Shown here: positions 53,718 through 64,000 of the stretch, one piece after another
How positions within the stretch are numbered: the stretch's first letter is position 1
How the letters are laid out: each line of letters opens with the position of its first letter
Assembly: GCF_041956535.1 (NCBI RefSeq)
Contig: NW_027192224.1
Location: 165,136 to 229,135, forward strand
From: Calcarisporiella thermophila CBS 279.70
Lineage: Eukaryota; Fungi; Calcarisporiellomycota
Length of the DNA: 64,000 bases
Direction of reading: 5' to 3'
Program-made: the position numbers and the translations under genes
Notes under the pieces: generated by a model
The model's database searches: none
What the model was told of the DNA's origin: nothing
Seen by the model: the letters and a program-made list of their open reading frames with translations, nothing else

Positions 53718-56401
53718 ATGGCTGAAGCTGAGGTCTTCGTAGCATCCACCACCCCGACTTCGCGAGGCCCGGACATTTTTCTAACCCGGCCCGCGCCACC
53801 CCGTAGGCGCGTCACCGGCCCCGACGGCGAATCCCGCCCGCAATCGACCGAGGCCCTCCTCGTCCAGCTCCAGCGCTCGCAGGCCATGTGCGACGAGCGC
53901 AGCGCCCGGATCAAGCAGCTCGAGGCGCGCATCACCGAGCTGGAGACGCTGCTGGACGCCCACAATGCCCAGTTCCGCCAGAAGGAACAGACTGAATGTA
54001 GCGTATTTTCTCGTGCTGATGCCATGAACGAACACGGGCTCTAACCCCGCGTGTTTCCTCCCCTTTGTAGCAAAGCTCCGAGAGGAATGCTGGAATCTCG
54101 AGCTCTCCATCCAGGACCTTCGCAGCCAGCTCGAAGCGGCCGCCCAGTCCGCCACGCGCCACCAGAACGACCAAATTCGGTGGCGCGAGCTGGTCGCGGC
54201 CGCGGCGGAGCAGGTCGAGCAGCTCCGCTCTGAAAACGAGGGCCTCCTCGCCAAGCAGGCCGACGCGAAAACCCAGGCGGAACAGGAGAGCGCCGCCCAC
54301 AGGCGGCAGCTGGCCGCGCTGCAGCGCGAGAACAAAAACCTGGTCCAGCAGATGCAGGAGCTGGTCGCCGAGCTGGAGGGCCTGCGTCACAAGGCTCGCA
54401 TTGCGCAGAGACCGCGGTCCAAGCAATCCGCCGCCGCCGCCGCAACCATCCTGCCCCCGGAGGATGCGCCCGCTGGAGCCACGGGCTCAGAGCTGGAAAT
54501 CGATTTCGCGGATCATGCTGCGCTCGACCGGCCGCGCGGTGAGCCCCTTGGAATGCTCCGGGACCACGCCGGGTCTCCGCGCGAAAGCCCAAGCCCCAGA
54601 TCAAGCACGAGGGCGAGACGGAGAGGCTTCGGGGTCCGGTTCGGCGGGAAGAAATCGGTCCGCGCGAAGAAAGCCGGCGCCCACGGTGGAGAGGAGGGCA
54701 CGGGCGAAGTGCCGGCGCCAGAGGAGAAGCCGCACCCGCAGCGACGCCCCAACGCGGACTCCCAGCTGGAGGACGAGGACGCCCTCTCTGACGAGGACGA
54801 AAATGGGCTGGACTCGCGGCTGCTGCCTCCCCTGACCGAGTACGACGCCATGCTCTCCGCCGGCGATTTCATTGCCAACAGTCTTTTTGCAGAGCTCTCC
54901 GCGCTCAACCACGCCTCCCCGCTCGTCTCCCCCCCCTCCGACTTCTCGTCTTCCACCGCCGAATCGCGCGCCGACTCTCCCCTCAAGCCGGAAACCTCCG
55001 AAACTAGAGGCGTGCCCAAGGAGGAGAGCGCCAGCACCCTTCTCGGCCTGACCTCTCTCCTGTCGCAGACGGGACCTTCGGGTGCAACCGCCCCGGCCGA
55101 GAAAAACCCCGGAGGCGCCCAAGAGTTCGCTGAGACAAATCGGAGGGCTGTCTCCGCACCCGTCGCCCCCGCGGGCTCGACGCAAGCCACACGGCCCCCC
55201 TCAGAAGCAAAGGGAAGAGGGGGGAGGGCGCAGCGTGCAACGGATGAGACATCGGAGATTTCCTCCTCGAGGGCTTCGCAGGGTAAAGCGGAGGCCGCTA
55301 GCGACAAAGAGACTTCATCCCGTAAGAAGCAGCCGCATCGGTCTCAACCCTCCCTGGCGAGCACAACCCGGCGCTCGAAATCCTCATCCAGCGAAAGCCT
55401 GAGGCACAGAGAGGCCTCCGCCCTGCCCGAGTCCCTTCGGATCCCGTTTGACCTGCCCGCCTCCAAGCCTTCTCGGGCACTGGTGTTACGCCGTACCGAA
55501 TCCACCGATAGGGTGTCCTCCCTGCACAACCCCCCTCCCTCCTCTGACCACTCCAAGTCAAAACCTGCCGCTTTAACCACCCCAGCCACCACGTCGCCGT
55601 CCACCACCTCCCTCTCCTCCTCCTCCGCCTCCGCTTCCTCCTCCGTCCCCGCCTACCCTCCCCACAAACGGTATGCTTCGGGCAAGCGGCCCAAAGAGCC
55701 GGCTCGGGCCCCCGCGGCCCACCGCGGCCCAAGAGACCACTTCATTGCGGTGCCCAACTTCGTGCCCGTTCCCGTCCCGATGAAGTCCAGGATACTCCCC
55801 GGGAAAAACAGGGCGAAAAAGCAAGAGAATCCGCCGCCAGTGCCCCCCGCGCCCGTGGATAAGAGCATCCTCGCCGCCATCACGGCAACCATGATGGGCG
55901 AGTTTCTGTGGAAATACATGCGCAAGCTTGGAGGAGGACCGTCCGAGAAGCGGCACCAGAGATTCGTGTGGGTGCACCCCTACATGCGCACCATTTATTG
56001 GAGCGCAAAGCGACCCGGCGTTGTCGGATCGGCGGAAGCGAAAGCCAAAAGTGGTAATGTCTCTTTCCACGTCTACGATGGCGATTTCCTCCTTGGGTTG
56101 GACCTGAGACTAACAAGTCCCCATGTATCACTCTCCTTCTTTTTTTCCCCCAGCCTTCATCGAGTCCGCCTACGCCGTCCCCGGCTATCCGCAGCAAAAC
56201 CCCGATCTTCCGCATGTCTGCTTGATCGTGCGCACGCCCCAACGCGAGCTCAAATTCATTGCCGCGTCTCGCGAGCGCCACGACATTTGGATGCGATCCC
56301 TCACGTATCTTCTTTCGCGCCCCTGGGTCTCGTCTTCTGCAGCATCACTACCCCTCCGGCTGGAGAATCAGACAAGCGTCTCGAAAAGAGCTGAGGGCTA
56401 A
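53718..56401 (+). CDS. Num1/ApsA/Mcp5-like cortical protein (coiled coil + Mcp5-type PH domain), 3 exons
   Basis: N-terminal coiled coil; AAITATMMGEFLWKYMRK..KRHQRFVWVHPYMRTIYWS..TPQRELKFIAASRERHDIWMRSLTYL. Confidence 0.85.
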
Positions 56402-57216
56402 GCAAAGGGGAAGATGGGCAGCTAGGCAGCCAGGCGAACGAGCGAGCAATATTCGATTAGATTAATAATGACAAATAGCCGATCCTATCATCCCCCGGGC
56501 GGTAGCGGTTCCAATTAGATATCTAGATAAGTTATTACGCATTTTGTTTCACGCTTCATATAATTGAATCATCCCTATTTCCATTTAACATTGTGATTCC
56601 CCCTCCCATCCAATTAATAGACATTCCACTCTACCCTTCCCTCTAATTTATTTCTCCACCCCCCTCTCCTCCATTCCCCCTGCGACCAATCCTTGTTAGC
56701 TTCTCGTTGTTTCTAACGAGTTTAGGCAACTTGTTCATCCTTGTCGTTCTTAATAGCTTTATTTTGCCCTCTATCTCTTTGACATAATTTTGTTTAGTAA
56801 TGCAATGTCTCGAGTTCTCTTTTGTTTAATTGGCTTAATACAAGTGAAGTGACAAGACAGTGTGAATGTGGGAACCTAGATCAATAATCGAGGTTTCAGA
56901 ATGTGTATGAAAGCTAAAGGGGGGCAAAATTACGAGGGGGCCTTGAGAACGGAGGTGGACAGGGTGCATACCAGGCCAGAGTCCATGTTGTAATGTCATT
57001 TTTATTACAGTGGCATTACACAATAGATGAGGGCGATCTTTAAGGAGCCGACTGTAAAGGGCAATCGCCTCACATCACAGAGCATGGTACGACGATAGCT
57101 TTCAAATTTATTATCTTACATAATAGGACAATCTCTGCAAACACGCAAAGTAAGCTTCTGCCTACCCCCCCCTTTCCTGCACACTCCGTGCGTTCCACAA
57201 CCGAAATCGCGAGCCT

Positions 57217-58022
57217 TCATCGCCTCTTCTTGAAAATCTCAACGTGCTTTTGCAAGCGCTCCCACTCGGGTGTAGTTGCTTTGACGCTGGGACGCGATCG
57301 AAGCGCCCGCCCATACGCATTGACGCGCTCGTATTCTTCCGTCTCTGGAATCTCAAAACCAATCTCTTGAACCAGAGGAAACCGCGCAAAGAATGGAGCC
57401 ACCGCAATGTCCGCATAGGTCAATTCCTCACCCAGGAGGAATGGTCCATCGGATTGTTTCACGAGGAAGTCGTTAATCTCACGTAACCCCTTGAGGAACT
57501 GTTCGTACTCCTCTACGCCGGCGGAAAAGGCTTTGAAGAAATGGGGCAACACCCTCTCGAAAAGTCCCAAGAACAATCGAGATTGAGCACGGGCGAGAGG
57601 ATCTTGGACCTGAATGCTGTGGAAGAATCGCGGTGAGATAATTGATCAACACTCTGCTCGTGTGCTACTCATTAGCCCATTTCCATCCTCACCTTGTATT
57701 GTTCCCATACTTTTCCAACAAATACTCTAAAATAATAAGCGACTCAACGATGGTCTCCTCGCCTACCTTGAGCGCGGGGACTTTTCCTTCGGGGTGTACT
57801 TTGAAATACCTAAGTGAAATCGAAATTTGAATATCACATTGATATGGGCAATCTTCTTTACCACTCTATATAGAATGGGCCTTACCACTCAGGCTTGTTG
57901 GAGAGATCGATGGGAACGGTCTCATCCGGAACGACGCCGAGTTCTTGTAGCGCGATAGCTGCGCGCTGGCAGAATGGACACTCGTGTGATGTGTAGAAGA
58001 CAAGGCTTTGGTTGGAAGACAT
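57217..58022 (-). CDS. Cys-type glutathione transferase (omega/DHAR-like, CPFC motif), 3 exons
   Basis: YTSHECPFCQRAAIAL..IDLSNKPEW|YFKVHPEGKVPAL..IVESLIILEYL; C-domain GPFLLGEELTYADIAVAPFFAR. Confidence 0.9.
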
Positions 58023-60055
58023 AGTGCAGGCGAGGTGCCAATGGGTGGTTATGGATGCTTATTCGGATGAATTGGCCTTGCCTAGGACACTATATGTCCT
58101 TTTTATAGAGGGCATCGGAAAGACTTTCAAAATATATCATCCAGCATTAATAAGCAAACGTGGTTATCTCGTACTCCGAATTTCAACCCGATACAATAGT
58201 AATCTGATGCTTCCCTCTTCCTCGAGATGAATAAGTAACCCTATTTCACACTCATAGAAGGAGAGGTGGACAAGATGAAGCTGGGCAATGTGGAGCTTGC
58301 TATTGGCTATGTTAAACTACCGATGTTGGATTAATATACCATAAAGAGAAGGGATGAATCATCCTTGTGGTTACTACCCCCATAAATATCTAGGACGGAT
58401 ATACATTATTGCGGAAAAATGAATCCATCCGCTCATTGAGCTTTCTCGATATTCCATCAAGTATTAGTGTTCGATTTGGATCTAACAAAATGGACTTTTA
58501 CACAGAGAAACGATTTGTATTGTTAAACGCTGGTTTTTTTATGGATGTTACTAACAATTTATGTTTGTGGTCATAACAATATCAAGGCACAGAGAATGTA
58601 CGGTGGGGTAGCTTCAACTCATTATTTCTTATTATTAATATTAAATTTCCAAACAGAGTGCTTAAATATCAACTTATGTTGACATGCGCATATTCATAGG
58701 CTCATGAATAGGTTGGTATTTAAGCATAGATAGGAGATGCTTTGTAAACCTCTGCTGGATATCACTATTTTCAGTGCAGTGCACGACAGCTCATGTATGG
58801 CCCGGCGAGGATTCAAGTGGCAATTTTTTTCATGCACGCATAGCTTTTCTCGCCAACTGCACAAACCCAGCTTATGCATTTGGTAAGACATTTATTCATC
58901 TGTGGCTCATTAGCTGCCTGGAAGACAAATGTGGCGAATTTTAGCAGTCTCCCATTGATTCTAGTTCAATTGGAATTAGTCTACAATGAACGCACTTCTC
59001 GTCTCTGTATTCCTGAATGCCAGCTTAAACTAATCAATAAAGACAAAACTATTTTACATCAGAAGATATCATCCTGACGAATTGCTTCTTTTTTTTATTA
59101 ATCTCAATCCACAAACTTCATAAGGAAACTTCCACTGAGTTTTTTTCAGCCTGGTCCTGCCTTGGGTGCTTAAGTCGTTACATACTAGAAAAATCCACCA
59201 ACCTCAACACGTGTGTGTGGATGCCCGCTTTATCGCAACTACATGATTTATACCTGAAAGGTCGATCTCAACCACGCTCTTAGTTCGGAAAGCTTGGTTA
59301 AAGTAAATCTTTTTATCTGATTTATTCGCAACTACCCAGGTTCCCATTTCTTGAGTTTCGATTTCAATTATTCAAAGTATCATTGCTTCTTCATTAAATA
59401 AACACTCACCAGACTCTTTGTTGAGTTACTAGAACGAATTTGCGGCTAGAGGCCAGAAAAAAATATTGGAGAATAGATAATGAAATTCAGAATATTGAAT
59501 CGTAACCGCATTTTAATAATGGTACGAGGAAAATATTGTCACTGACATTTGCCAGCTTAGAACGTATGTTGATTATGTTTATGTGTTATTCTTTACAAGT
59601 AAAGAGATGATAAATTGAGAAATATCCAAGATTAATATTAAAAGCGGGTACATGATTTGGAATATCTTCCTAAATCTTTCGGATGGTAATGAGCCAAGCT
59701 CTTTTAAAGTGGAAGCGCTGTCATCTAATCGAGGTTTTCAATAGGCATGAGCGACGCAAATAATGCTGTTAGTATAGAGTCTTTCCCACATGCCGTTGAC
59801 TATCTACTACCTTATCATTGCTTATTAACAAGCTTGTTAATATGAAGTGGAAGTGTTCGCCTTTTAATCGGATATATTCGAGGCCTTTCTTGGCCCTTAA
59901 CTTAGTTCGCTTTTACATAGGTAGTTTGGATTTCTATAAGAAACATTATAGAATAGATTACTGTAAAAAGCATCTTATACTAGACTCTATCTATCCATTA
60001 TTTTAAACATTTACAAAAAGCCAGGTGGCAAACAATGATAGAAATCCTCATATAC

Positions 60056-60421
60056 TCAAATGAATGGAATAGCGGGCATAGCTCCTCCACGAACATATGG
60101 AGTAAAATCCATATATTCTGCATCTTGGATAGAAACTCGAATACTTATAAGGTGAGGATCCCCACTTGGAGACTGGCCGTTTATCCACGGTAAATTACGA
60201 ATACGGCCAAGATGAAGTAACACAAGCATAAGCTGGCACCCCTCTTGACGCCGAAACATACTCTGCTGAACTCGTATATACCCAAACTCGGAGAGGAGAG
60301 AGGCAATTTCTTTATAATGTTGGACATGCGAGCCGTACGATTCAATTAGGGCCCTGCGTCCTAGGTCGTACTGAATTATCCAATGTCCAAAACTCACAAG
60401 ACTTTCTCTAACAGCTTGCAT
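60056..60421 (-). CDS. VapD/Cas2-like ferredoxin-fold nuclease homologue, copy 1 (intronless, 121 aa)
   Basis: WIIQYDL (hhhhYD with the catalytic-position Asp19), L..SYG..HY.EI..LL..FGYIRVQQSMF (Cas2 RVQxSVF / VapD GFxxxQGSVY), LPW..SIRV..MDFTPYV (VapD W..DIR..DFT). Recognised by eye. Confidence 0.78.
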   Translation of the reverse strand: MQAVRESLVSFGHWIIQYDLGRRALIESYGSHVQHYKEIASLLSEFGYIRVQQSMFRRQEGCQLMLVLLHLGRIRNLPWINGQSPSGDPHLISIRVSIQDAEYMDFTPYVRGGAMPAIPFI

Positions 60422-60975
60422 TTTGTTAATTTTATGTATTTGAAGAAGTTGACACTAATATGAAACCAGGTTGAGCTTTATTGAACCTATGCTGATTTAA
60501 CTCAAAGCTTTTATACAGCAAATACAATACAATATTTGCTGTCATTAGATTACAACATGAAAATGAATGAAGCAATCCTTTCTATTTCATATGAAAAGCG
60601 TACATATATCAAACAAAGAGATGATGCTAAATTTGAGACCATAATGATCTAGGAAGGGATGTTATATTTCTTGTCCCATATCCCCTGTGTGCCTTGTCCA
60701 AAGAGAGGTAAGTGCAATAGTGGGTCCTTTGTAACACTTTAATAGCCCACAAACGATTTATCAAATATTATTCACCTAGCTTTGTGTTGTTATGAATTTA
60801 ATCTGTTAGGTTATAGTTATATCTATCTCCTTTGTTTCTTAACATGACGAATTGAATATTTCATGAAGCCACATCAATTAGGTTTAAGAATATGAAAAAT
60901 CTGATATATACGTAAGAATGAGTCGTCCCGAGAAGCCAACCAAAGCAACTCCCAATTCATTTCTATACAAAAACA

Positions 60976-61976
60976 ATGTCGGAAGAAAATACTCCTCTGG
61001 ACATCGAGTATATAAGAAATCGTAGGCATTAGTTAACTCTGACTCTTTTTTTCCTCTTTTCTATCTCCTACTGAATATCTTTTGATATATTCTGATAAAC
61101 AGATTGCGAGAACATCCTTAGAGATAGTGAAGAAGTAGCACGAGTGTATTATGAGTGCATGATTACCGATAAATATGGACAAAGATACCTTGATCCTGCT
61201 AAATGTGAGACCAACAATTTCGATCCGATAAAGTAAATGGGTTGGTATTGTGATCCAGCTGAGGTACAGCTGACGTATTCTATAATAGAGCTTGTAATGA
61301 CCAAGTTACGAGGATGAAGCTAATAGCCAAGTATTGCAGCGATATTAGTAGGATGTATGATTGGCGTGAAGCAGACAGATTGATATTATCGCTTATGTAA
61401 GTAAGCAATAACTCATATATTATTGATATATGGAGGGTGGAGTGAGAGTCATCTTGCCTCTTTAGACCAGAGAAATATCAGAAAAAACAAACCGGGCGCT
61501 CTTCAAAGGCCCCCTATATTCCGAAGCAGTCTCATATGCGTGTTGAAAAGCGATCACAAAACGTAAAGAATTCAGGGTTGATTTTAGAGACATATTACCA
61601 CATACTCCCATATACAATCATTGCAGAAAATTATTTCCTCCGTTTCCAGTGCAGCTCAACGTATCATCCCGAAGAAAGTCCAAAAGCGCAGCGGAAAGCA
61701 ATCGAAGAGAGTAAGTAGTGAACATCTAATTCGGACTTTATCTGTCATGACTGGTTGAGTATCATTTTGGCACTCTTGCAGGAGGCTCTTTCTATGCTCT
61801 GCAAGGCAGGCCAACTCGTCGGATGTGAAGTCAACATCGGCGATACCTATGCTAAAGTGATTGCCGCTAAAATGACTGAGGACTCTGTCCTGGTGGAAGT
61901 GAAGGAGGAGGTAGAGGAAGGTGTCTGGGATCAGTATGAGATCGAGTATAATATAAATATGAAACCGCTTCATTGA
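60976..61976 (+). CDS. Six-exon orphan protein (219 aa), divergent from VapD-like copy 1
   Basis: Exons 60976-61021, 61103-61232, 61289-61396, 61466-61562, 61627-61710 and 61782-61976 total 660 nt. All five introns are GT-AG and keep the frame open to TGA. Confidence 0.78.
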
Positions 61977-62794
61977 ACAAAGTGCAGAAATTAACCAATG
62001 AATATACATTGAATACAATACGTGTTATCAGTAGGTCAAATTAGACAAATAAATGCATCAATATTTTTCTACCTTTTTCTTAAAGTATATAAATTAGACC
62101 GAGATTCTTTTTGTCAATCAAAGGGAACTCTATTATAGCTAGTGACCTAAGTATTGCCATAGGTTGGTTCCAATGGAAAGCGTAGGGAAGGTTAATACTA
62201 GAACTGAGTACTGAAGGGAGAAACGGAATCTAAATTCACTCCAGTGAAATGGAAGAACAACAAATCTAGCCTCTGAAACTGTAGAACATATTTGGTTATA
62301 GAAGAAGCTTGGACTCATTTTGTAGCATTTTATTTTTTAGAATCCATATGTGAATATCAAAAATATTTTGTAGTGAGAAGCTAACACGAGTTTCCATCCA
62401 TCATCTTCGATAGTTTAACATATGATTGTATATACTCTGCTTGATTCGTACACATTTGGCGAGGAATGCGACAATGACCCTCTAGAATAGTGAAATGGGC
62501 AACATGTAATGGCCAAATCACATTGCCCAAGGTCATATTTTATTATCCAATGACTTACATTAATAAAACTTTTTCTAAAGGCTTACACTTTGTTCATTAT
62601 ATAAATAACAAAAAATGCGCGGACAGAGTAATTGTGTTGACTCTATGTTACCTCTTAATCATTATTGCCACAATTTAATTAAAATCGATTAGGTTAAGTT
62701 TAAGATAATGAAAATTTGGTATATATATATAAGTATGACTTGTCTCGAATATTCAAAAAAATTAAACACCTGAAATTATTATCAAGCAAACACA

Positions 62795-63042
62795 ATGTCA
62801 GTGGAATATACCAGTCTAGACGTAGAGTTTCTAAAAAAATCGTCTGCATTAGGAAATTTTATAACTTATAGCATCTTTTAATATATTCTATCTTCTACTT
62901 TTACTGAAAAGCCTATAACATACTTCGATTAAAAAGATGCATGAGCCTCGTTAGGGGGAATGAAGAATCAGCTCGGGTATATTATGAGTGCATGTGCACT
63001 AACAAATATGGACAAACGTATCTCGATCCTGAAAAAGGCTAG
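62795..63042 (+). pseudogene. Truncated paralogue of the 60976-61976 orphan
   Basis: MSVEYTSLDVEFLKK|..EESARVYYECMCTNKYGQTYLDPEKG* versus MSEENTPLDIEYIRN|..EEVARVYYECMITDKYGQRYLDPAKCE. TAG at 63040-63042 replaces GAG; exons 3-6 not recognisable. Confidence 0.8.
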
Positions 63043-63579
63043 GCTAACAGAAATATAAGTTTCATGCCTTCTCTACTTCCCAAAAAATATCGTTTATCCT
63101 TTATTTTGTACTGATAAAAATACCATTGGAGATTATGACGAAGCAAGAGTATATGAATTTTACTTTGATTATTCATAAAGTTGATATGCTTGCTACTCTC
63201 TCCCTTTTAACAAGCTAGCAAAATATAGGCGAGTTTAGATTTTATCATGTACAAAAGAGAGGAATTTTACTACTTACACAAATATATGAAGTAAATTACA
63301 TGTACTCAACCTCTTGAATGGAAGGAGTGGAATTCGAATCCATTTAATTGAATTTGGAAGGCAGCATTTAATCAACTTTATAGCACACCTTTAGTAATAC
63401 AAGCACCTGGCGATTTATTTTGCAGGTTATTGTAAAGTATTATTCTTAGATGCGCATCTCAAAAAATTTGTAACATCGAGCTAATAAATGGTTCTAACCG
63501 TTATTATATGCTTAACTTTCTCTGCCGAAAAAGCAAAATATTGGTAACCAACGGAGGCTTGTCGAGTCCCTTGTCATGC

Positions 63580-63945
63580 TCATAAGAGAGGAATAAAAGG
63601 CAATTCGCCACCACGTACATAATCTGTGAAATCCATAAATTCTGCATCTTGTATAGAGACTCGGATACTTCTTATATGGGGATCACCACTCGGAGATTGA
63701 CTCCTCACCCACGGTAAGATCCGGATATAAGAAAGTATACCCAGCACTTCAAAGAGATTGCAACTGTTTTGTTGTCGGAATATACTTTGCTGGATTCGAA
63801 AAAATCCGGCTTCAGACATGATAGTGGCGAGTTCTGTGTAATATTGAATATGTGAACCATATGAATCGATTAGGGCTCTTCGCCCTAGATCATATTGGAT
63901 GATCCAGTGGCCAAATCGAAAGAGACCCTCTCTGACAGCCTGCAT
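63580..63945 (-). CDS. VapD/Cas2-like nuclease homologue, copy 2 (intronless, 121 aa)
   Basis: Ungapped paralogue of copy 1 (82/121 identical by hand count); retains WIIQYDL, GFFRIQQSIF, LPW, SIRV and DFT. Confidence 0.78.
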   Translation of the reverse strand: MQAVREGLFRFGHWIIQYDLGRRALIDSYGSHIQYYTELATIMSEAGFFRIQQSIFRQQNSCNLFEVLGILSYIRILPWVRSQSPSGDPHIRSIRVSIQDAEFMDFTDYVRGGELPFIPLL

Positions 63946-64000
63946 TATATTCTTTTATGAGTTCAAAAGAAAATCAAGAGCAAAATACCTGTGAAAGTAT

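Follow-up and report, generated by a model that had tools for sequence, protein, structure and literature searches.

Has a bacterial VapD-type toxin-antidote module taken up residence in a fungal nucleus? The question is raised by the last few kilobases of a 64,000-nucleotide stretch of the Calcarisporiella thermophila CBS 279.70 genome (assembly GCF_041956535.1, contig NW_027192224.1, positions 165,136 to 229,135 of the forward strand), where intronless VapD-like open reading frames (ORFs), termed V below, lie beside a spliced gene, termed O. The whole stretch is referred to as the window; it corresponds to C34:165136-229135 in an assembly of 28.2 Mb and 116 contigs, and contig C34 terminates at 241,882. 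By analogy with bacterial systems, we propose that V and O may form a eukaryotized module of the VapXD/VapYD kind, in which O directly neutralizes V, a proposal whose chances we put at about even. The evidence for it lies in the remote kinship of V with VapD, the recurrence of V and O head-to-head in two fungal phyla, the purifying selection on both genes, and the predicted fold of the last exon of O.

The best-preserved unit in the window consists of V1 and O1. V1 (60056..60421, minus strand) is an intact, intronless ORF of 121 residues assigned to the VapD family from the ORF list, a sequence profile and a structural model, and is a putative nuclease and toxin. O1 (60976..61976, plus strand), the putative partner or antidote, is a six-exon gene with exons at 60976-61021, 61103-61232, 61289-61396, 61466-61562, 61627-61710 and 61782-61976. 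These total 660 nt, or 219 codons plus a stop, and all five introns run from GT to AG and measure 56-81 nt. V1 and O1 are divergent, and their start codons enclose an intergenic region of 554 bp (60422..60975), presumably a bidirectional promoter. The second intact 121-residue VapD-family ORF in the list, V2 (63580..63945, minus strand), is 68% identical to V1 without gaps and belongs to another subfamily. Between the two units lies O2 (62694..63049, plus strand), a truncated O pseudogene whose surviving parts are the promoter-proximal region, exon 1 and the greater part of exon 2. An ATG of its own lies at 62795, and an early stop, TAG, interrupts it at 63040-63042; it aligns to 60878-61216 with 67% identity by blastn, and a genome search concurs. 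About 200 bp upstream of O2 sits a V relic of some 20 N-terminal codons (62523..62582, minus strand), 55% identical to V1 residues 3-22 by tblastn and matching the 5' end of the C2 copy of V at the DNA level, and therefore the decayed middle unit was once a head-to-head V/O pair too.

This layout agrees with a preliminary description of the locus made from its letters, which had placed an orphan gene between two minus-strand VapD-like ORFs in an AT-rich block. The order of the genes, their coordinates and the truncated orphan duplicate were all confirmed, and an independent rebuild of the exons recovered the spliced, divergent gene of 219 residues, with 554 bp between starts for the approximately 555 bp given. 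A further partner, sought past position 64000 upstream of V2, is indeed present (O3, beyond 65104 in window-extended coordinates), but it is a pseudogene, so that both cis partners of V2, O2 and O3, are broken.

The relationship of V to VapD was examined with a profile built from the six intact genomic copies. Against PDB sequences, this profile matched Haemophilus influenzae VapD (6zi0, 6zn8 and 6zi1) at E-values of 7e-6 to 3e-5, with query residues 14-111 aligned to residues 4-93 of the VapD chain, and the only other matches were the VapD proteins of Campylobacter jejuni and Helicobacter pylori. By the profile, V is nearer in sequence to the VapX-associated VapD of H. influenzae than to VapW-associated or stand-alone VapDs, and it scores higher with VapD than with Cas2. 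A word-based protein search with V1 gave no match, and single V sequences reached 13.7-16.4 bits with the Cas2 family TIGR01573, below its cut-off of 24.5.

The predicted structure points in the same direction. The AlphaFold2 (AF2) model of V1, built from a shallow alignment of six sequences and of moderate confidence (predicted local distance difference test, pLDDT, 77; predicted template modeling score, pTM, 0.72), shows a modified ferredoxin-like fold (beta1-alpha1-beta2-beta3-alpha2-beta4). Ranks 1-3 of a Foldseek search of the PDB were all VapD entries, with E-values of 0.09-0.35. In an exhaustive VIA search, the best of 48,161 chains was 9kan_D, from the C. jejuni VapD-VapW entry (Z score 7.4, 90 residues aligned), leading the next match by 1.7 Z; H. 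influenzae VapD 6zi0 stood at rank 3 (Z 5.7), and several Cas2 chains trailed VapD at Z 4-5.

An Asp (D7 in H. influenzae and H. pylori, D11 in C. jejuni) and a Ser (S43/S46) have catalytic roles in VapD (PMC11980593). Their counterparts in V, Asp19 and Ser54, are invariant in 6/6 intact copies, line up with the Asp and Ser of two H. influenzae VapD motifs, FDL and QGS respectively, and have equivalents in the homologues P0001, P0003, P0004 and P0007. On these sequence comparisons, V is a genuine, though remote, VapD relative with the catalytic residues retained.

O was examined exon by exon, with structure prediction covering exon 6. Across phyla, conservation is seen in an exon 2 motif of about 40 residues and in the C-terminal domain of 64 residues encoded by exon 6 (61782..61976 in O1, plus strand). 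In C. thermophila, Lys, Arg, Ser and Gln abound in exons 4-5, which are not conserved in the homologue from Rhizophagus clarus. For exon 6, AF2 predicts one helix followed by a small SH3-like beta-barrel (pLDDT 92.7). VapX and VapY, which are the antitoxins in the VapD clade to which the H. influenzae protein belongs, are likewise SH3-like barrels, without sequence similarity to one another, and VapX occupies the cleft of the VapD dimer, occluding the active site (PMC11980593). The exon-6 model aligned with VapX chains of 6zn8 at Z 5.4 over 56 residues in an exhaustive search with VIA-align and, in a second look, at Z 5.9 over 59 of 66 residues (rank 8 of 1000); alongside VapX stood SH3, Tudor, KOW, Sm/Hfq and EF-P barrels at Z 5-6.6. 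On this model, exon 6 would belong to the same fold class as VapX and VapY, a match that is suggestive yet non-discriminating with respect to specific kinship.

Sequence searches with O gave little beyond its own family. No family was found for exons 2 and 6 in Pfam or among PDB sequences, and the 27 database homologues of the exon-6 profile all come from C. thermophila, Funneliformis or metagenomes, with no named bacterial protein among them. An atlas feature search with exon 6 returned merely sub-threshold small bacterial hypothetical proteins (score 0.86), and an atlas shape search returned generic SH3-like barrels. Dissimilarity in sequence between O and VapX is a weak criterion, because VapX and VapY share no sequence similarity with each other. 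A prediction of the complex between a V dimer and O exon 6 returned a score of 0.00, taken here as evidence neither way. Given the VapX/VapY-like fold predicted for exon 6, the whole pair may be of prokaryotic origin, with introns gained later. The preliminary description had joined a prokaryote-type nuclease to a eukaryotic, intron-containing partner; the first half of that claim holds, V being a VapD relative, but a partner with a predicted SH3-like barrel is no mere eukaryotic orphan.

The same barrel could serve a different purpose. V and O may constitute a co-regulated two-subunit enzyme, in which the barrel and the basic linker of O target V to RNA, chromatin or foreign nucleic acid, as in an anti-viral or anti-transposon nuclease complex whose function is abolished by losing either gene. 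The match of the barrel to VapX is equalled by its matches to KOW, Tudor, Sm/Hfq and EF-P domains, whose ligands are nucleic acids or histone tails; exons 4-5 are basic and resemble a nuclear-localization or nucleic-acid-binding linker; Cas2 relatives serve as structural subunits of complexes; and the conserved linkage and purifying selection reported below would be expected of such an enzyme too. The R. clarus homologue does not preserve the basic linker, which speaks against such an enzyme, as does the pattern of decay among the copies, and we consider a two-subunit enzyme unlikely, although it deserves to be kept in mind.

How the two genes are distributed bears on whether O instead acts as an antidote to V. 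In the genome, V has 19 matches and O has 17, and the V/O unit of about 2 kb occurs at about ten sites. V and O are found together, mostly head-to-head, on C34 (several units), C2, C3, C18 and C110, and together in rearranged form on C1 and C32; C5 holds a V relic without O, and C21 an O pseudogene without V. This pattern is far beyond chance. The promoter-proximal region, comprising roughly the last 130 bp ahead of the O start codon, is strongly conserved across four copies, and the V1/O1 intergenic region has been co-duplicated with both genes, with 76-82% identity to the C2 and C3 copies.

The state of the copies is unequal. Both genes are intact in V1/O1, in the C2 unit and in the distal unit of C34, and an intact V stands beside broken cis copies of O in the case of V2. 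An intact O accompanies a broken V on C3 (frameshift) and C1 (in-frame stop), as it does in R. clarus and Funneliformis caledonium, making four loci in three species, and the reverse was seen once. That O outlives V at four loci fits a poison-antidote relationship, and it is not predicted for an obligate two-subunit enzyme. A multi-copy, patchy and decaying distribution in AT-rich regions, with many copies near contig ends, is likewise more typical of selfish or conflict genes than of such an enzyme.

Linkage could also result from block copying, with V and O the passenger content of an uncharacterized repeat or mobile element. Homology among the dispersed copies spans about 2.0-2.6 kb, from the V stop codon to just beyond the O stop codon, and this compact repeated block, always with both genes, is what a passenger would look like; so is the abundance of matches (no fewer than 19 for V and 17 for O), among which pseudogenes are frequent and several lie near contig ends or on tiny unplaced contigs. 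We nevertheless judge this account improbable. The unit is not bounded by terminal inverted repeats, and the sequence on either side of the C2 and C3 copies has no ORFs for a transposase, integrase or reverse transcriptase; the inner 2-kb flank of the array is single-copy. Purifying selection and saturated synonymous divergence indicate that intact copies have been maintained and were not recently copied, and the same pair in the same orientation occurs in another fungal phylum beside unrelated genes. A transposable-element identity for the unit itself was considered and rejected, there being no terminal inverted repeats and no transposase, and homology stopping just outside the two genes.

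In a search of 1.84 billion representatives, the V profile found 18 relatives, whose sources are C. thermophila, R. clarus, R. irregularis, F. caledonium, F. geosporum and soil-type metagenomes. The V-like ORF is preceded, in R. clarus as in F. caledonium, by a gene without a name that runs divergently and encodes 168 or 190 residues. By exon-by-exon tblastn this neighbor is an O homologue, with 52% identity in exon 2 (E 2e-12) and 39-41% in exon 6 (E 1e-6 to 1e-7), the matches being collinear and on the expected strand. V carries stop codons in both species, and the O-like gene is annotated intact in both. The R. clarus start codons lie about 263 bp apart, and intron 2 of its O gene is identical in position and phase to that of C. 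thermophila. A metagenome contig, L036, carries an intact 121-residue V together with a divergent O whose exon 2 is up to 70% identical. The genes flanking the pair differ among R. clarus, F. caledonium and L036.

As judged from these alignments, head-to-head linkage of V and O is conserved across two fungal phyla, Calcarisporiellomycota and Glomeromycotina. The outcome named beforehand as fatal to the preliminary description, that the two families would occur independently of each other with no conserved linkage, did not materialize; they are mostly head-to-head here, in two Glomeromycotina and on one metagenome contig. In the literature on VapD in fungi and on toxin-antitoxin systems in Rhizophagus, no description of the V/O pair was found.

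The same comparisons bear on whether the locus is fungal at all. Bacterial contamination or mis-assembly at a contig end might be suspected from V, which is intronless and of prokaryotic type, and from a block whose guanine-plus-cytosine (GC) content is unlike that of the neighboring genes. Copies, however, lie inside contigs of 1.3-1.7 Mb (C1, C2, C3 and C5), O has five spliceosomal-type introns, one of which matches R. clarus in position and phase, and three further fungal species, assembled independently, have the pair as well. We attach next to no credence to contamination or mis-assembly.

Two further observations concern these relatives. A 253-residue, Asn/Lys-rich metagenome protein with two VapD-like stretches (P0018/P0047) is a weak relative of V (E 6.5e-4), and occurs in 17 places on AT-rich metagenome contigs of up to 98 kb. 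Upstream of the O-like gene, R. clarus (L030 7740-7870) and the metagenome contig L038 (230-330) share a conserved region with CACGTG motifs and a TATA-like box; no such motifs were seen in the C. thermophila intergenic region.

Selection was assessed among the intact copies. The six intact V copies are each exactly 121 residues long, and between them the proportion of nonsynonymous differences (pN) is 0.14-0.25 against 0.4-0.83 for synonymous differences (pS). Between subfamilies, pS is saturated at 0.7-0.83 and pN is about 0.2; within a subfamily, the ratio of nonsynonymous to synonymous rates (dN/dS) is 0.2-0.3, and its overall range is 0.1-0.3. V1 and V2 differ by a saturated pS of 0.75 and a pN of 0.20, and the nearest paralogue of V2 is on C110 (dS 0.18). 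Since synonymous sites are saturated between V subfamilies, the paralogues are old and have been maintained, with no recent burst. The local duplication of both gene types advanced in the preliminary description thus stands as far as paralogy within the array is concerned, but not in its recency. A tree of eleven V proteins was poorly resolved and left the monophyly of the C. thermophila copies undecided.

For O, five copies (O1, C3, C2, C34 near 238.8 kb, and C1) have six open exons and all ten splice sites, and a sixth, on C18, lacks just exon 1, at the edge of the sequence examined. The dN/dS of O is 0.16-0.32, and its introns diverge more (0.18-0.47) than its nonsynonymous sites (pN 0.06-0.25). 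Among the intact O1, C3 and C2 copies, exon indels have lengths divisible by three, and intron indels do not. This pattern of indels and substitutions supports the spliced O model, which could not be checked against public gene models (P0002, P0020, P0024 and P0033), these being short and mis-spliced. The substitution patterns indicate that V and O are both under purifying selection and are functional genes.

These values weigh on the idea that V/O is a functionless, decaying relic of an old horizontal transfer whose frames remain open by chance. In this genome and in Glomeromycotina alike, pseudogenes and fragments make up most of the copies, and none of the six intact 121-residue V ORFs is annotated in public protein sets, as might be expected of such a relic. 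Six V genes held at 121 codons with pN far below pS, and five O copies with six open exons, ten splice sites and the dN/dS given above, are however incompatible with neutral decay, and the idea seems very improbable to us. Where public C. thermophila models do touch the family (KAL1914105.1, KAL1914102.1, KAL1914863.1 and KAL1914865.1), they are short, mis-spliced bits of V or O copies; KAL1914105.1 is a mis-spliced rendering of the V pseudogene on C107.

Constraint is not uniform along V. Residues 57-76 (window positions 60194-60253 in V1), a 20-residue surface segment made up of a loop and the predicted helix alpha2, evolve 2-3 times faster than the remaining protein, with pN/pS of about 0.7 against 0.2-0.36 elsewhere; in the youngest pair, V2 and the C110 copy, the value is 2.6. 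From what is a small sample throughout, the segment may be a specificity interface.

We propose the following working model for a toxin-antidote pair, in which nuclease activity, toxicity, binding and neutralization are all inferred from bacterial counterparts. V would be a VapD-family Cas2-fold nuclease with catalytic Asp and Ser, acting as a dimer that damages RNA and/or DNA. O would be expressed divergently from the short shared intergenic region, and its C-terminal SH3-like barrel would bind the V dimer and block the nuclease, with the exon 2 motif and the variable basic linker contributing to regulation or localization. The unit of about 2 kb would have multiplied by tandem and dispersed duplication in AT-rich regions, often near contig ends, and been kept for long periods under purifying selection, with the nuclease usually decaying before its partner. 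Biologically, the pair might serve selfish addiction or drive, non-self recognition once hyphae have fused, or antiviral suicide.

Several observations weigh against neutralization of V by O. Single V sequences fall far below the curated cut-offs of the VapD model NF041506 (18.5-19 bits; cut-off 100) and of the Cas2 model PF09827 (14-16.5 bits; cut-off 23.8). For O, VapX is just one among more than 100 chains above Z 5, the SH3-like barrel being a very common small fold, and a profile of eight exon-6 sequences matched no chain among PDB sequences, VapX included, at E up to 10. Linkage is frequent rather than universal. O occurs alone on C21, on L038, an R. clarus-like metagenome contig with no V in the 335 bp upstream of O, and on L039, an F. 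geosporum contig with an O relic and no V; V genes or relics without O occur on C5, L033, L034 and L035; outside C. thermophila these are relics in R. irregularis and F. geosporum and two divergent V genes from metagenomes. Within one genome, moreover, co-duplication of a 2-kb block would keep the genes adjacent even without functional coupling. Divergent transcription, although natural in a eukaryote, is a true departure from the bacterial operon, and an addiction mode is hard to specify in a coenocytic fungus. Finally, about half of bacterial VapD homologues are partnerless (PMC11980593).

The most far-reaching form of the proposal is that a complete bacterial-type VapD module, nuclease and SH3-barrel antidote together, resides in the nuclear genomes of early-diverging fungi (Calcarisporiellomycota and Glomeromycotina), where it has gained introns together with a bidirectional promoter, and functions to this day as poison and antidote, spreading and diversifying in coenocytic hyphae as a selfish element or a means of non-self recognition. 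This we advance only tentatively, as possible but doubtful.

The surroundings of the array in the window differ sharply from the preceding sequence. GC content is 0.6-0.7 at 50-56 kb and 0.30-0.43 from 58 kb on, changing abruptly from about 0.65 to about 0.35 within 56000-58100, just past a glutathione-transferase-like ORF near 57.9-58.0 kb that is the last of the ordinary genes. From this switch to V1, the inner flank of the array (2 kb) is single-copy in the genome. In the other direction, the array extends 12.7 kb beyond the window, up to the end of C34, with more copies of V, among them an intact one, and of O, all broken but one, in the parts examined. Its position alone suggests a subtelomeric location; TTAGGG-type telomere repeats were absent from the C34 contig end. 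C110, an unplaced contig of 2116 bp, is an 81-90% identical paralogue or alternative version of window positions 61445-64300 and does not contain the decayed middle unit (about 62052-63048).

To our knowledge, type II toxin-antitoxin modules are regarded as a prokaryotic invention, and the known eukaryotic poison-antidote elements are unrelated to them in origin. If our proposal is true, a type II module can enter eukaryotes, adapt to eukaryotic gene structure and persist there, and V/O would be the first natural type II toxin-antitoxin system we know of to operate in a eukaryote. O would then represent a third, independent SH3-barrel lineage of VapD partners, with a bearing on how VapD is inhibited. 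In coenocytic fungi, among them mycorrhizal species that matter to agriculture, the pair would also offer a testable candidate for intragenomic conflict, allorecognition or antiviral suicide. The absence of six intact nuclease ORFs from public protein sets, for its part, exposes a systematic mis-annotation.

Among known systems, the eukaryotic ones share the logic proposed for V/O and little else. The wtf genes of Schizosaccharomyces, Spok of Podospora and peel-1/zeel-1 of Caenorhabditis elegans tightly link a poison with an antidote, and form multi-copy, fast-diversifying and often pseudogenized families in variable regions. They are eukaryote-born, several put both functions in one gene, and transmission distortion defines them. 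V and O are unrelated to them in sequence and fold.

With Cas2, V shares a ferredoxin-like fold, an N-terminal catalytic Asp and weak matches to the Pfam and TIGRFAM Cas2 families. Unlike in Cas2 adaptation modules, no Cas1, CRISPR repeats or other cas genes were found in the regions examined around the copies, and the VapD score is the higher. The C. jejuni VapWD system (9kan) provides the best structural match of the V model (Z 7.4), and VapWD arrays are built of repeated A-T-A-T units (PMC11980593), as V/O is of repeated units. VapW, however, is an inactivated VapD paralogue, whereas O is not VapD-like and every intact V keeps the catalytic residues.

The closest counterparts are VapXD of H. 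influenzae (6zn8) and VapYD of Muribaculum. V/O differs from both in its fungal host, in its divergent genes with a shared region of 554 bp where the bacterial genes form an operon, and in an O of 219 residues with five introns, an extra conserved N-terminal motif and a linker. O has no detectable sequence similarity to VapX, and, compared with bacterial VapD, V carries an additional N-terminal strand and an inserted loop around residues 80-90. What V/O has in common with VapXD and VapYD is a VapD-family Cas2-fold protein with catalytic Asp and Ser, an adjacent partner with a predicted SH3-like barrel of about 60 residues, and tandem duplication, to which bacterial vapD modules are prone (PMC11980593); and V is closest in sequence to the VapX-associated VapD.

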